A stretch of 61,892 bases of DNA, counting the filler, from Choristocarpus tenellus KU-1152 (Eukaryota > Protista > Phaeophyceae): NCBI GenBank assembly GCA_964200185.2. It is 11 parts of 11 records of this genome, joined end to end, with 100 filler letters (N's around TTAATTAATTAA, not from the genome) between each part and the next. Parts side by side here need not be neighbours in the genome. Positions count along the whole stretch, not along the records: positions 18,364 to 24,710 come from CAXNAD020008338.1; 10 more parts are not named here. One strand, 5' to 3'. Below are positions 18,364 through 24,710 of this stretch, piece after piece. Within the stretch, counting starts at the first letter, position 1. The number at the start of each line of letters is the position of its first letter. A program made the translations under genes and the position numbers. Under the pieces are notes generated by a model, which ran no database searches, had not been told where the DNA came from, and was given only the letters and a program-made list of their open reading frames with translations.

Positions 18364-18880
18364 CGTCAGCTTCTTTCGACGAGAAGATGCACACGACATA
18401 AGCGAGTGGGAGATCCAATAGACATCTCGAGTGGTCGAGCCCCCCCTTTTACGAGTATCTAGGAAAGTGGAGATTATGGATTGCAGCAGGGGGTATATAA
18501 CACCAGGAAAAAGGGAAAAGCAAACTACACGCATAGTGTTCAAGCCCTCATGAGGTATCACAAGTCGCCCATCGACTGCCAGGCCTTTCCAATCTCGTCG
18601 CAGTCACATAAGTGATCTTCCCAACCCGCAAAGTCTGTTCCAAGGAAGAAGAGTTGACTTCTAGTCGAACCGTCTTCCTCAACTTCGCGTCAGCTTCTTT
18701 CGACGAGAAGATGCACACGACATAAGCGAGTGGGAGATCCAATAGACATCTCGAGTGGTCGAGCCCCCCCAAAAGAGCAAAGTCATCACCAACAAGAACG
18801 GTTCCTTTCAGTTTGTGAACACCTGATGAAGGACTTCTTTCTGATCTCAGCAAGAGGTGTTTCCTATCGAAGCTCTCTTA
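18364..18880 (+). mobile_element. 83-bp direct duplication (18364-18446 = 18688-18770) plus a degenerate hammerhead-like core; possible Penelope-like element end
   Basis: The exact repeat is seen directly; CTGATGA at 18823, a hairpin, then GAAGCTC at 18869. The classification is inference. Confidence 0.35.
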
Positions 18881-19325
18881 TGCCATCCATGATCGTCGAC
18901 CGTTTGTAGGGATAATCTCAAATGGCAAAAGACCTGGTGTTCATTGTGTGAGGCGTGTAACTGAATCAGGTACGGGTTTTGTATACATTATTTTTATTGA
19001 CAGGTTGTTGAAATATGAATAGTGAAGCGAATAGGTTGTCCAAAAAAGTAACTTCACTCAAATGTACTTTGAACTTTGCACCATACACAAACCAGAAACC
19101 ACTACGCATCTTTACGCGTAGGTAGAAGCAAACAGGAGTAGAGTTATTACCCAACCTTCAAACAGCAGCAATGATGAAGGGAAGCTTCAAGAAAAGGCAG
19201 GGTGGGGGACAGAAACTCCCGTGATGTGGGGGTTCATTGTGCTTTTGGATACCATTGCTTAGGTCTGTTGGTGCGTTGATTGAAGGAGAGTCTCTACGTG
19301 CAACAACGGATATTTTATACTAAGG

Positions 19326-19410
19326 GTGAAACAGGGGCATAGGATGCCGTGTTGGACTTGCAGGGGGGAACACCCATCGGCGGAGTGCCCTCACCGTGTT
19401 CGACGACGAG
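19326..19410 (+). mobile_element. Gag-like zinc-knuckle relic
   Basis: CWTCRGEHPSAEC (CX2CX3HX4C) followed by a basic RVRRR stretch. Confidence 0.35.
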
Positions 19411-20278
19411 TTTCTGCACCTGTAAACCGAGGTGTGTGTGTCTGTGCGAGTACTTTCTTTGAAGTAGATTATACTGTTGTTTCAAGGAATTGCCAAACTG
19501 AAGGAAGGAGCAGGTTTGCTGTGCAAGAGAGAGACGTGCTTATGCGAATATATTATTCGTAGACCACCCCAAACAGTGGACTATGATCCATTACTCGCCC
19601 TCGTAGAATCGTCTGTCATTCTTCCAACACCGCAACCACCAGGCACATTCCATAACCTTCTCTATCAAAGGCTTAGGCTATGGCCTTGGAGAGGATACCC
19701 ATAATTATTGAAGAGACTGCTGCCAGCTCGTTGCCTGGTGCTGTCCCTTGCGTCAGTGGTTACGGAGCGGAAGGAGTAGACATATTCTCTCTATCTCATC
19801 AACCTCGAGTACGAATTTGAGCCAACCTTCCCACTTTTGCAATCCCTCGCTTCATTGGCACCGAATGCTTGGTCAACCATTGGTCCTCCCATATAACTCA
19901 GTTTGAAGAAATCCTGTTGCGACCCTATTGGCGTGATCGCTGTGGGGATTCGCTTGTGGAATTATGGGCTATTGTTGGGGGTGTTTAAATACCTGGTCCC
20001 ATGGACAAAGCGTGTATGTCAAAGGACAGCAGACAGTAGGTTTCGCTTTCTTACTCTTTACTGTCTTATCCTTAAGTCAGGGTGTTGTTGTGCAGATTAG
20101 GTCAGTGAGCAACAGCTGGAGCAATGCTACAACCATCCCAGAGGTGGGCAATACCCAACTCGTCTTGAGTAACACATTTCTAGAGGTATGAACTTGGCCG
20201 TCTTTCAGCTCTTCTTCCCTCAACCCATCTCATATTCCAACCCTCTAAATATAACAATTCATCAATATCCTACTGAAG

Positions 20279-21589
20279 GTGCAGTCCCACGACCAAACCA
20301 TGCAGGGACACATACTGTGGAACTGTCAAGGACACGAGATCCGAACGAGCGCAGGAGTTCAGGACATACAGACTGGCGCACAGAGAGCTCCACCGCCGCA
20401 TCATGGCTTGAGTCTCGTGGGACAGAGGAAAGACCAGGGGTGTTGTGTGGGGAGCTGGCAGGGACAGACACAAGAGCAGTGAGAACACGGAGGGTAGGTC
20501 TGACTGGGGCAGGGGGAATGGTGGAGAGAGGGGCAGGGACAAGAGCTCCACTTAGGAATCAGCGACAAAATCAGCAACAAGTGGGTGCAGGGAGGGGATC
20601 AATGGTTTCACTTAGTGAGGAAGAACGCCTTCGTGCATTTGGACATTTAGTGGGGCAGCGCATCAACGGAGTGAAAATTGTTAGTGCTGCAACCTGGCAG
20701 GCTCTGAATGAACTGGCAAGGGTGAGAGTGCAATGCAACAAAATACAACTGTACTCCTTTTTTTTATTTTTTTGAGACATTCTTTGCCTGACCCTGCTTG
20801 CAGAATAGACATTGAACTATTTTTGCATAATATTATTAAAATGTCATTGTGGTGGCTGGAGATATTGTTTGATAAGGCTTTTTTACTGTTGCTCCATCCA
20901 AGAGAAAGTCTGGGAGGGGAGGAATGGGCCAGGGCAGGGGTGCAGTGGGAGAATAAGTGGCAGGCTGGACTGTGAATGGAAGAAGTGAGTGTCTCTGACT
21001 GTTGCAGAAAGCTTGCCTGGCTTATGTGCCCTGCCTGCCACACACCCATCCTCACACAGCCTGTGCTGTGTCATCAATGCCTCCCCTGCAACACGAACAA
21101 CTCCTTGCACCCACCTTGTGAAGGCTTTCTTCCTCTCCCCTTCACGCACATACCTGTCTTCGCTCTTTACCCCCCCCTACTGCCCCCCCCCCCACCGTTG
21201 ATGTGAGTGACTGGGCAGGTAAAGTCGGCATCCCAAGGCCTGGCTCTGTTGGGCTGTGCCCTAGCGGTGTGGGCATATGACAACGCCCTCCTAATCTCCT
21301 TATGGGGTATAGTGGTTGGGACAGGGACCCTACTGTGGCGTCATGCCAGTCCAGATGGGGGAACCATGCACCTTCGAGTGGGGTTTTGGACCGGAGGGAT
21401 AGTGGCAGGGGGGGGGAGGGGTGGAGCTTTGAGGTCTGGGAGCGCTGGAGAAGGAGCAGAGGAGGAACCTAACATTTCTGAAACGGCAGCCTCATTAGAG
21501 AGGACGAGAAGGGTGTTGCTAGCATTGGCATGCCTGCCTTCTGCACTAGATGCCTTTGCCCAGTACTCTTTCCTGTGCCTGGCTGGAAG
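20279..21589 (+). CDS. Unknown probable membrane protein, partial exons
   Basis: GC-rich ORF ending ...WQALNELAR|gtgag (20721), and an exon from ~21219 (VKSASQGLALLGCALAVWAYDNALLISLWGIVVGTGTLLW..., donor gtcagt) with hydrophobic helices. Full exon structure unresolved. Confidence 0.4.
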
Positions 21590-22638
21590 GTCAGTGTGTT
21601 TCTCTCCGAGTGGGAAGTGGGAGTCACTTTGGGGTTGGGGAGGGGAGGGGAGGGTAATGCTTGTGTGTGCCGTGGAATACTTTTTTTTTTGTTGTTGTGG
21701 AAATTGTGTGCAGAGTAAGATATTGCAGAGTATCGTGCCTTGGAAGATAACATGTGGACTGTGTTGACGGCCTCGATGGGAGGGATTCGTTAAACATTGA
21801 GATAGTCCTGTTCCACTGGGGCAGGCCGTAGTGTTGAACAATATCAGATGCTGGAAACTTTCCCCTCCATCATATTCCGTGGGCCACCACCCCGCTGATA
21901 TAGCGCTTTCCCCGAGCAGTCATCTCAAAACTTTGCGTTTTCCCTTGAGTCCTATTCCCGGACCCCTCTCTCACTCTATTCCTTGTCCTCCCGCTGTAGG
22001 GACCTGGGAAAGTGGTCCAGCTGGGGCTCGATCCCTTGGCCTCTGATTTTGTTGAAATTTTTTGGTTTAGATGTAAGGAAATGAGAGAATGGGACACTTT
22101 CAGCCACCGAAGTTCCGAATCTGACTTTAAATAATCCGAGAATGGTGTCTCTTTGCTCTTAGATGACACCACACTTACTTAGGTCAAAAATGACACTTAG
22201 ATGCACCATATTGATCGATGCATGCATGTAGTGCACTTTCTATCTACAGGCATAAGGTGATATGGGGAGGGCGATTCATTGATTTTTGTATTTTCTAAAC
22301 CATAAGTTTTCTGTGCGTGGACTCTTTGCCGGCATTGCGTGACACATAGTTCCGTGCTGCAAAATCCAGAGCACCATGTGGGTAGCTACAGGTCGCCACA
22401 GAACGACACAGAGCGCCTCAGCACTGCAGTTCAGAGCAACATCATCAGTATTTATAAATAATAGGGTTTTGGTTTAGTGGATGGTGCTACATGATCACTC
22501 GAGAAACCATTGATGGAATACTCTGAGATTTATTCCATCAATGGCGGCAAACGCGATGATCTCTGGCGTTCAGAATGGACTCCAAATGATCCGATGGAGT
22601 TTGATTAAATCAAGGTTGCATGCGCAACGCACGAGGCA

Positions 22639-22694
22639 ATACCCATGAGGTGATACCCATGAGGTGATACCCATGAGGTGATACCCATGAGGTG
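22639..22694. repeat. 14-bp tandem repeat ATACCCATGAGGTG x4
   Basis: Four exact units. Confidence 0.95.
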
Positions 22695-23383
22695 CCAAGC
22701 ATTGTGAGGCAACTGTGAGGATGTGTCAAGAGAATCATGGGACACACACACACACACACACACATGTATATGTCGGAGATGGATTGACTATTTGACTATT
22801 TTGGACAAGGTTTTCATTACGGTGTTGATTATTTTTCGATTTTTTTTGAGTAAGCCGTGTCGACTAGATTGTTGCGATTTGCAGGGCTATCAGTTACGTA
22901 CAATTTCCTACAGTTTCATACAGTTTCATACAGTTTCATACGATGCCACTGACCTCCAATTTTATTAACGGAAAAAAAAGGGGAAGTTTTCTGGATTGGC
23001 AGGCAATCCCCCTACTGAAAGGGCTCCATTGATGGCGCTGGACACCACTGTGCCTCTTCTTGTTGATACCATTAGGTTTTTCATGTGAAATTTGGAATTT
23101 GGTGGTGTGCAAGGTTTATCAAAATTGGATCAAGACAGACTTTGGCGGCGCAGTTCCCCTTTCTACTACCTTTTACAAATTTTCACCCTCCTAGAACCTC
23201 AACAGATTAAAAATTATATATATATATATACAAAAATTATCTACTAAGAAGAAAACTGTTATGATACATTTTTTCATGTTGGGTTATGTTATTTTGTACA
23301 AAAGAATATCATAACTCAACACTATTTTTTCTTTTTTACACATCTGCAGACTGGGGAAAAAACACTGAAAGGAGAGGGCCAAA

Positions 23384-23590
23384 AAAATCACCGGCTACCA
23401 AGGATATTTTAACACTAGAATTGTCTATATTTCTGAGTCAGGACCATATTTAAAAAGAAAAAAACGCCTAGCGATTATGGACCAAGATGGTAAAAATCAT
23501 CAATATTTGACTGATGGTAAGGATCTGGTTCTTACTCCAAGATTTTCACCAGATGGAAAGAAAATATTATATCTATCATATAAGAATGGA
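23384..23590 (+). pseudogene. tolB: Fragment of bacterial tolB (Tol-Pal beta-propeller protein), alphaproteobacterial/Rickettsiales-like
   Basis: Stop-free 69 codons [69 protein letters not shown]. This matches the recalled alphaproteobacterial TolB pattern (TG..GYF.TRIVY.SESGP...R.KRLA.MDQDG.N...[12 protein letters not shown]). About 32% GC by hand count; no start or stop of its own; absent from the ORF track. Confidence 0.85.
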
Positions 23591-24479
23591 TATATATATA
23601 TATTTTTTCATCTATAATCTCAGATTTTCTAAAAGAAGTGGTGTTTGTGTTTAGTGAGCTCAATGTGATCATGGACTCAAGCGCTGCTTTGCGAATATAT
23701 CCTGATCAGACAGAAAAAAAAAATCCTATGTACTGGTTGTCTCGTTGAAGGTAAAAAAAGGGTGTAAGAACATCTACAAAAAATAAAAAAAAGACAGTTA
23801 TTATTTTATTTTGTTTTATTTTATTTTTTTGGCGGGGGGGGGTTGGGATGGAATGCACATCGATACTTGGGTTAATTCGTGCAACATAACGTATTGAATT
23901 GATTCATGGAAGGCGTTTGGTATACTTGCAGGGTTGTGTTGCGTGGACAACAACTTGCGATGTGTTGATGGTTTTGGTAGGGGTTGAGAAGCATCGGGGT
24001 TCGATTGCTTTTCACCTTAGTATCTGCATTGGGGGTGAAGGTGGGTAGACGAATTGGACTCAGCTGGGCTGTTCCACCGTATGGGCTGGGGATTCGATGA
24101 TGGATGGTAATGTTGTCATCCCGATGTGTAATTGGGTCTTGTGGTTGCAAGCAATCTTACCACCTGACTGCACCATGCAGAGAATGCATGTTGACATGAT
24201 GGAGTTCACCCTAAACTGCACAATCACTACAATCCGTATCGTCTCATGGAAGCACTGATCCTATCGCTTGGACAGGGTTCCTCCTCCTCCCCCTACCCAT
24301 TCACCGAGTCTTTATTTTCCTTGTGCTGCGCCCTGCTGATTCAATATCAATTATCAATATCAGTATCAAGTATCAATTATCAATATCGATATCGATATCG
24401 ATATCAATATGTTTTGGTGCATTGCTGTTGTTATCTCTTAGGTTTGACTCCTTCAAGGTGTTTTTATTGTGTTGCACTA

Positions 24480-24710
24480 ATGTACCTACCCATGTACCTA
24501 TCAATGTACCTACCCATGTACCTACCAATGTACTTACCCATGTACTTACCCATGTACCTATCAATGTACCTACCAATGTACCTACCCATGTACTTACCCA
24601 TGTACCTACCCATGTACCTACCAATGTACCTACCAATGTACTTACCCATGTACTTACCCATGTACCTACCAATGTACCTACCAATGTACCTACCAATGTA
24701 CTTACCCATG
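24480..24710. repeat. 12-bp minisatellite ATGTACYTACCM x~19, runs into contig end
   Basis: Seen directly; produces spurious MYLP/VPTH ORFs. Confidence 0.95.

Follow-up and report, generated by a model that had tools for sequence, protein, structure and literature searches.

A short, barely altered tolB fragment of Megaira-group Rickettsiaceae within eukaryote-like DNA: a probable recent insertion at a split AT palindrome

How does a piece of a bacterial gene come to lie within satellite-rich DNA of eukaryotic appearance? The question is raised by positions 23384–23590 of a window of 61,892 nucleotides (filler included) joined from records of the Choristocarpus tenellus KU-1152 assembly GCA_964200185.2. 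The locus lies in the 6.3-kb piece at 18364–24710 (CAXNAD020008338.1), and all coordinates count along the window. A sequence-only reading had described it as a truncated, stop-free stretch of a Rickettsiales-like tolB gene and had proposed a recent nuclear insertion, perhaps captured as filler during break repair. Here, we examine what the fragment is, which lineage it came from, how old it is, where it ends, and what kind of DNA surrounds it.

The plus strand at 23384–23590 carries 69 codons without a stop at 32.4% GC, confirming the 69 uninterrupted codons at ~32% GC noted before, and its translation gives the same residues. The remaining five frames over this interval contain 3–7 stops apiece, and shuffling of its bases left the frame stop-free in 223 of 100,000 cases (0.22%). 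GC3 is 23%, and most of the 18364–24710 piece is at 45–60% GC. From stop to stop the frame runs over 82 codons (23369–23614), with a TGA before it (23366–23368) and a TAA after it (23615–23617). TIGR02800, the NCBIfam TolB equivalog, matched the fragment with E=1.6e-21 over profile positions 147–212 of 418; the score of 76.7 bits falls short of the 343-bit whole-protein cut-off solely owing to the fragment's length of 69 residues. A Pfam search returned one PD40 blade motif (E=1.8e-5), and solved TolB structures align with the fragment at residues 155–222 of the 430-residue E. coli chain. The region covered is what we take to be the junction of the TolB N-terminal domain and propeller, together with the first blade. 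The span proposed earlier is thereby supported, with the domain boundary placed according to the TolB fold as we understand it. The profile match and best matches that are themselves TolB, with 94–96% amino acid identity to Rickettsiaceae proteins, likewise bear out the gene assignment: 23384–23590 is a piece of tolB.

It is a gene fragment and not a tolB gene, as it comprises only residues 156–224 of the 443-residue Rickettsiaceae TolB and has no start codon. The full TolB architecture, with signal peptide, N-terminal domain and six-bladed propeller over ~430–445 aa, is absent from it. In relatives, tolB is preceded by MotA_ExbB, ExbD and a 279-aa gene. The 18364–24710 piece showed no trace of a tolQ/tolR/tolA neighbourhood, and neither further tolB pieces nor real NCBIfam or Pfam families besides TolB were found in it. 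A eukaryotic PD40 or "TolB-related" gene was also considered, and was excluded by 92% nucleotide identity to, and nesting within, Rickettsiaceae tolB.

The donor was sought in one scan of 185,579 species genomes. Best matches were three Rickettsiaceae MAGs (L001–L003) at 94–96% amino acid identity, with other Alphaproteobacteria reaching at most 74%. The complete L001 TolB, used in a word search, recovered a tight group of relatives, many of them from Logan run assemblies. Two Logan sequences, L166 (SRR33375174) and L167 (SRR30765337), were closest at the DNA level, with 91.7% identity over 206 bp and no gaps (blastn). Nucleotide identity by blastn was 88.6% for L162, 88.2% for L002 and 85.6% for L001. 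Whole-protein identities to named genera were measured with L001, a close relative of the fragment, as its proxy. These were 59% for the Ca. Megaira endosymbiont, 59% for Trichorickettsia, 59–60% for Tisiphia and 58% for Rickettsia. Ca. Megaira sensu stricto, Rickettsia, Tisiphia and Trichorickettsia were rejected as donors on these TolB identities to L001 of only ~58–60%.

ML trees of TolB were computed by quick searches with SH-aLRT support, the fragment being placed by its 69 columns only. The first tree put it in a four-row clade with L001–L003 (SH-aLRT 100). With named references included, it fell in an 11-row clade (SH-aLRT 98) within a 42-row clade (SH-aLRT 99). The larger clade includes the named Ca. 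Megaira TolB and leaves Rickettsia, Tisiphia and Trichorickettsia outside. The smaller one includes L001/L003/L162–L167-type TolBs and CAN0604665.1, a 190-aa partial TolB in the assembly of Ectocarpus sp. 12 AP-2014. Its contig is 572 bp long, is all tolB, and lies loose in the algal assembly GCA_964200275.2. The peptide thus nests in Rickettsiales (SH-aLRT 98–100), and the AT-rich, Rickettsiales-type intracellular source that had been predicted can be narrowed, by scan and ML trees, to the "Megaira group" of Rickettsiaceae.

On these trees the donor clade is the Rickettsiaceae "Megaira group", specifically the subclade with the Ectocarpus sp. 12-associated TolB. The donor itself appears to be an unsampled species of this Ectocarpus-symbiont subclade, no sampled genome exceeding 91.7% nucleotide identity. 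The Ectocarpus sp. 12 symbiont has been assigned to Ca. Penulousia from GenBank data (preprint 10.64898/2026.03.27.714854). The same preprint equates Ca. Penulousia with "Megaira group" clade B and GTDB Megaera_A, lists Ciliophrys, Bryopsis, Flectonema and Azumiobodo as its other hosts, and gives 1.51 Mb and 35.4% GC for its type genome (10.64898/2026.03.27.714854; for the clade see also Lanzoni et al. 2019, PMC6362216). The name Ca. Penulousia may apply to the donor as well, carried over from the preprint and one TolB fragment and not from 16S or phylogenomics. TolBs of the Ectocarpus sp. 12 subclade resemble the fragment at 94–96% amino acid identity; they differ from it in being genes, whereas the fragment has 69 codons only.

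Several database entries encountered in the donor search deserve comment. Three lake MAGs titled "Rickettsia typhi" (L004, CAMCMD01; L005, CAMDSB01; L006, CAMCTQ01) have TolBs that group with the Megaira group, and their label looks wrong, as named Rickettsia TolB is ~58% identical to this clade. Contigs binned as Actinomycetota/Solirubrobacterales (L047, JBLNBU01; L049, JBLNCP01) have a TolB that falls among those of Magnetospirillum-type Rhodospirillaceae (SH-aLRT 100). Mis-binning of these contigs is probable, TolB being a protein of diderm envelopes. The gene 3' of tolB in L001 and L162–L167 is large and without Pfam domains. In L168 (ERZ25333188 ctg576), a 1.48-Mb contig and complete-looking genome of a sister lineage, a Tn3-family transposase fragment (L168:2548-3102) lies directly 3' of tolB.

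The age of the fragment was addressed by comparison with the seven nearest genes. It differs from these at 19–30 of 207 bases and in only 3–5 residues, and its dN/dS against relatives (0.02–0.08) lies in the range found among the bacteria themselves. Divergence is therefore almost all synonymous, in keeping with the youth claimed for the insertion. Five states are private to the fragment, four of them silent third positions and one a replacement. The sole private non-synonymous change among the relatives compared is a G>A at 23492 on the plus strand, giving Glu37Lys of the fragment; the residue at this site is E, A or Q in every relative inspected. No indel separates the fragment from the donor genes, with the possible exception of one additional A in an A-run. 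With about three quarters of changes expected to be replacing under neutrality, the binomial probability of at most one replacement among five private changes is ~0.016. It follows that nearly all of the divergence arose in a working bacterial gene. By this comparison, no more than one or two bases seem to have been altered since the fragment left the bacterium, so that it shows essentially no decay. The event is then either very young or not an insertion. Three signs of host residence were looked for in the fragment, namely neutral decay, internal host repeats and sharing by strains, and none was seen.

DNA homology to Rickettsiaceae tolB has sharp limits on both sides, and in blastn and alignments with the nearest genes it extends only over ~23381–23594. 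The tolB-derived segment occupies 23379–23594 on the plus strand with a core at 23384–23590 (blastn, alignments and TIGR02800); its 5' edge falls at 23379–23384 and its 3' edge at 23590–23594. Truncation at both ends, as described before, is thus supported. The sequence of the closest donor genes at the 5' edge is ...TACCAAAAAATCAC..., and the CC before the A-run may also be donor sequence. The "A7 run" previously noted at this edge proved in the donor alignment to be no host tract but an A6 run belonging to the gene, with one A added. At the 3' edge the donors have GG(T/A)A(T/C)(A/T)CC where the fragment's sequence passes into (AT)7. Here the earlier placement at a TA microsatellite held, the segment abutting (AT)7 at 23590–23603. 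Donor and flanks have no more than ~8 bases in common at either edge. An acceptor-like TGCAG lies upstream at 23345–23349 and had been judged to be out of frame with the fragment. The fragment's frame is indeed cut off from it, by the in-frame TGA at 23366–23368 (plus strand), which lies 3' of this site and closes the tolB frame upstream.

Further copies of the junction were sought. A junction 30-mer had no match in viral contigs, and a metagenome scan with the fragment peptide returned nothing closer than 84% amino acid identity. A short-protein word search yielded only two further truncated tolB calls, neither with the fragment's junction-derived tail. One truncated call, P0020 (ENA ERZ23498364, 671-bp contig, gene 363–584), is a 73-aa tolB product 94% identical to the fragment peptide. 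It ends mid-gene after ...TDGKD, and the contig runs on for another 87 bp; this may reflect a frameshift or a further truncated copy. A second fragment of tolB outside a tol context was seen in L081:1-1421 (JGI metagenome 3300013097, Ga0136639_10066502). There, positions 92–533 are ~90% identical to the L004 tolB and start directly after a (CATTTGTGCC)x9 tandem repeat. Short TTGCTTCGCTA / TAGCGAAGCAA elements break up the sequence, and (GTTGTA)n/(CTACAA)n hairpins surrounding GCGAAGC form its end. Two readings fit L081: a rickettsial pseudogene riddled with repeats, or a further case of a foreign genome capturing Megaira-group DNA.

The fragment lies in an AT-rich, low-complexity island of 24–35% GC (~23161–23830) within DNA of 45–60% GC, and is flanked by the two arms of a palindrome. 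The left arm (23204–23230; inverted repeat and TRF) reads AGATTAAAAATT(AT)n and contains (TA)8 at 23215–23230. The right arm (23590–23613) consists of the (AT)7 at 23590–23603 followed by TTTTTCATCT, and overlaps the tolB 3' edge. Positions 23204–23227 and 23590–23613 are complementary at 22 of 24 bases, and outward of both TA tracts the mirror-image sequence AGAT(T/G)AAAAA is found. Matching outer 10-nt flanks would be expected by chance in ~0.3% of cases among random 10-mers from the island. The palindrome could nonetheless be a by-product of the low complexity of A/T runs and TA repeats. A MITE with 24-nt terminal inverted repeats was considered as a carrier and rejected, as no target-site duplication is present (CTCAAC on the left, ATAATC on the right). 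Between the left (TA)8 and the tolB segment lies an AT-rich block of 148–153 bp at ~31% GC (23231 to 23378/83). Compared by blastn and tblastn, this block resembled none of the fetched loci; it had no plasmid match, and its open frames had no Pfam or NCBIfam match. The same searches gave no origin for the rest of the AT island. The block is possibly a second piece of filler.

Beyond the island, the assembled sequence provides non-bacterial flanks of ~5 kb on one side and 1.1 kb on the other, satellite-rich and at 45–60% GC. The piece contains four satellites, with 14-bp, AC, 10-bp and 12-bp units, as well as G/C homopolymer runs. The 12-bp minisatellite (24480–24710) has 19 copies and reaches the end of the piece; the others lie at 22639–22694, 22742–22764 and 22891–22941. 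Two exon-like stretches were noted on the plus strand. One, at 20284–20721, is stop-free with GC1>GC2>GC3 and AG/GT at its ends; the second, at 21207–21587, is open with AG/GT-like borders. These were searched singly and not as a spliced or joined model. The stretch at 20284–20721 gave a weak SAM_6 match (E 0.011) and had 0 matches by phmmer against 1.84 billion protein representatives. A word search with the ORF at 20188–20772 found no relative, and exact look-ups of four ORFs from the piece found no match. The stretch at 20284–20721 is either a lineage-specific gene or non-coding. Pfam searches of the long ORFs of the piece gave no match that identified the host. When 100 stop-free stretches of at least 38 aa were compared with NCBIfam and Pfam, TolB was the only real match. 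Neither tRNAs (ARAGORN) nor Rfam families (E up to 0.1) were found in the 6.3-kb piece. With their satellites, homopolymer runs and lack of homologous ORFs, the flanks look like eukaryotic non-coding DNA. A human source of the contig was discarded, since no feature suggested one.

Some repeats of the piece merit separate mention. The 12-bp (ATGTACCTACCC)n minisatellite, traced on both strands over 24376–24710, translates to GTLVGTWV... and PTHVPTNV... repeats. Spurious Pfam/NCBIfam matches to glycine-zipper, OmpA-like, Rick_17kDa_Anti and PT-repeat families arise from them with E down to 1e-9, and make the minisatellite a trap for automated bacterial-gene screens. A perfect 83-bp direct repeat is present at 18364–18446 and 18688–18770, the copies 324 bp apart and the first at the start of the piece. 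A 324-bp tandem duplication could account for it, or else an effect of the assembly end. A pair of 28-nt inverted repeats, 86% complementary and 3 kb apart, occurs at 20757–20784 and 23766–23793. Each is a T/A run with GAGACATTCTT / AAGAACATCTA, and they may be two oppositely oriented ends of a dispersed host repeat.

Taken together, the observations are probably best explained by the recent insertion, via break repair, of a ~210-bp internal tolB piece from an unsampled Megaira-group Rickettsiaceae into eukaryote-like DNA. We infer that the join was made in vivo, by the break-repair route, in a eukaryote that carries or formerly carried the bacterium. AT palindromes are known break sites, and work on NUMTs and filler DNA has established that end joining traps loose DNA with a few bases' overlap. 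In the sequence of events we propose, the (TA)n-centred AT palindrome would have broken at its centre. End joining would then have resealed the ends and trapped ~359 bp, made up of the 148–153 bp AT-rich block and the tolB piece. The joins would have used very short overlaps, the A-run at the tolB 5' edge and "TATA" at the 3' edge. Without the insert, the palindrome would read AGATTAAAAATT(AT)nTTTTTTCATCT and be ~359 bp shorter. The fragment would be a dead passenger of 69 of ~443 codons, with no start and with stops lying 16 bases before it and 8 codons past its end. On a scale of sequence divergence the event would be very recent, and its target would be non-coding, satellite-laden, AT-rich DNA. 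The split (TA)n palindrome around the fragment is consistent with the filler capture during break repair suggested by the sequence-only reading. A more far-reaching variant, which we regard as doubtful, is that the broken AT palindrome captured several genome pieces of an unsampled, still resident Penulousia-like symbiont, whose mosaic would make up the entire 359-bp block and possibly a larger share of the 670-bp island. If true, this would be a near-real-time snapshot of symbiont DNA entering a protist or algal nucleus, and would point to a host lineage in which no Penulousia-like bacterium is known so far.

A serious alternative, albeit an unlikely one, is that DNA of a live symbiont or contaminant was joined to host DNA artificially, either by the assembler or in vitro through ligation, PCR or MDA template switching at A/T-rich microhomology. 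A chimera with live-symbiont DNA would look much as the fragment does, undecayed and with dN/dS like that of live bacteria. Both edges show A/T-rich low complexity, the piece has a repeat at its start and a minisatellite at its end, a pattern seen in short-read contigs, and the 572-bp contig in GCA_964200275.2 shows that same-clade symbiont DNA, all tolB, can lie loose in an algal assembly. Moreover, the join is present in one assembled sequence, and the same junction was not found elsewhere. An artefact would, however, require two independent false joins ~210 bp apart within a 6.3-kb contig otherwise free of symbiont DNA. No sequence of k-mer length is common to donor and flanks at either edge. 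We consider insertion more probable than a mis-join because donor and flanks share nothing long enough to mislead an assembler. The bacterial piece is also internal to the contig and its flanks pair as one palindrome, which favours insertion; matching arms would be unexpected from random chimeras.

Two further explanations were weighed. Very improbably, the recipient was not nuclear but an organellar genome or other large non-nuclear element. At ~47%, the GC content of the piece is one that plant mitochondrial DNA can also have. The piece is nevertheless rich in micro- and minisatellites and in G/C homopolymer runs, and nothing in its 6.3 kb matched a tRNA, an rRNA, or a family of intron RNAs or organelle proteins. 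A precedent exists in the mitogenome of the fern Haplopteris, with 30 degenerated Rickettsiales-like coding pieces (PMC10027690), but the donors there are Holosporales-like and belong to another clade. We find it hardly credible that the fragment was adopted as a host coding exon or domain (a PD40 blade) and kept by selection. Adoption would account for the intact frame, open over 82 codons (23369–23614), and would fit the acceptor-like TGCAG at 23345–23349 and the mostly silent divergence. Silent-biased divergence is, however, common to the bacterial lineages and accounted for by them, and the in-frame TGA at 23366–23368 separates the acceptor-like site from the fragment. Codon usage has stayed wholly bacterial (GC3 23%) within surroundings of 45–60% GC. 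In addition, 69 residues spanning a domain boundary and one blade cannot make a propeller, and no short TolB-like protein with the junction-derived tail was found.

A real join would make the fragment a molecular footprint left by a marine lineage of "Megaira-group" Rickettsiaceae that is, or was until very recently, associated with a eukaryote. The host range of this lineage is only now emerging and takes in Ciliophrys, Bryopsis, Ectocarpus and diplonemids. Few DNA transfers from professional endosymbionts into protist or algal nuclei have been documented; among rickettsial cases Volvox stands foremost, and no endosymbiont DNA transfer was found in a 2026 study of diplonemids. A real insert this young, with both junctions readable, would show entry by end joining at an AT palindrome before decay sets in. 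If the join is not real, the locus cautions that host contigs may contain symbiont DNA.

Comparison with known systems places the fragment among several kinds of insertion. Wolbachia insertions have reportedly been found in the nuclei of arthropod and nematode hosts. Like the present fragment, these are DNA of obligate intracellular Rickettsiales, range from a few hundred bases upwards and are mostly non-functional. They differ in their Anaplasmataceae donor and animal hosts, and in that many have been verified by FISH, PCR or long reads. Filler capture of the NUMT/NUPT type is likewise said to take place at double-strand breaks. Such capture proceeds by end joining with 0–5 bases of microhomology, often takes in several unrelated pieces and often occurs at AT-rich fragile sites. 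The source in those cases is organellar, whereas here it is bacterial, and the split palindrome and short overlaps suggest the mechanism.

The nearest counterpart is Volvox carteri, whose nuclear DNA contains Rickettsiaceae gene pieces of 16S, murB, ddlB and ftsQ (Kawafune et al. 2015, PMC4324946). As here, the donor is a "Megaira-type" Rickettsiaceae and the genes are truncated without frameshifts (PMC4324946). The Volvox inserts lie among host-specific repeats and a transposon, and were read as endosymbiotic gene transfer (PMC4324946). Unlike the present fragment, they span 0.4–6 kb with several genes, are common to strains and were confirmed by PCR in symbiont-free strains (PMC4324946). Here, a single piece of ~210 bp derives from a different gene and a different donor subclade. 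The Haplopteris mitogenome also holds truncated bacterial coding pieces, with up to 94% amino acid identity to living relatives, whose read depth is continuous with the flanks and which show no expression (PMC10027690). It differs in its mitochondrial recipient and Holosporales-like donors (Caedimonas; PMC10027690); nothing organellar was seen in our piece. Set against these known insertions, what would be new here is a different donor subclade and a very small, very young insert with readable junctions.
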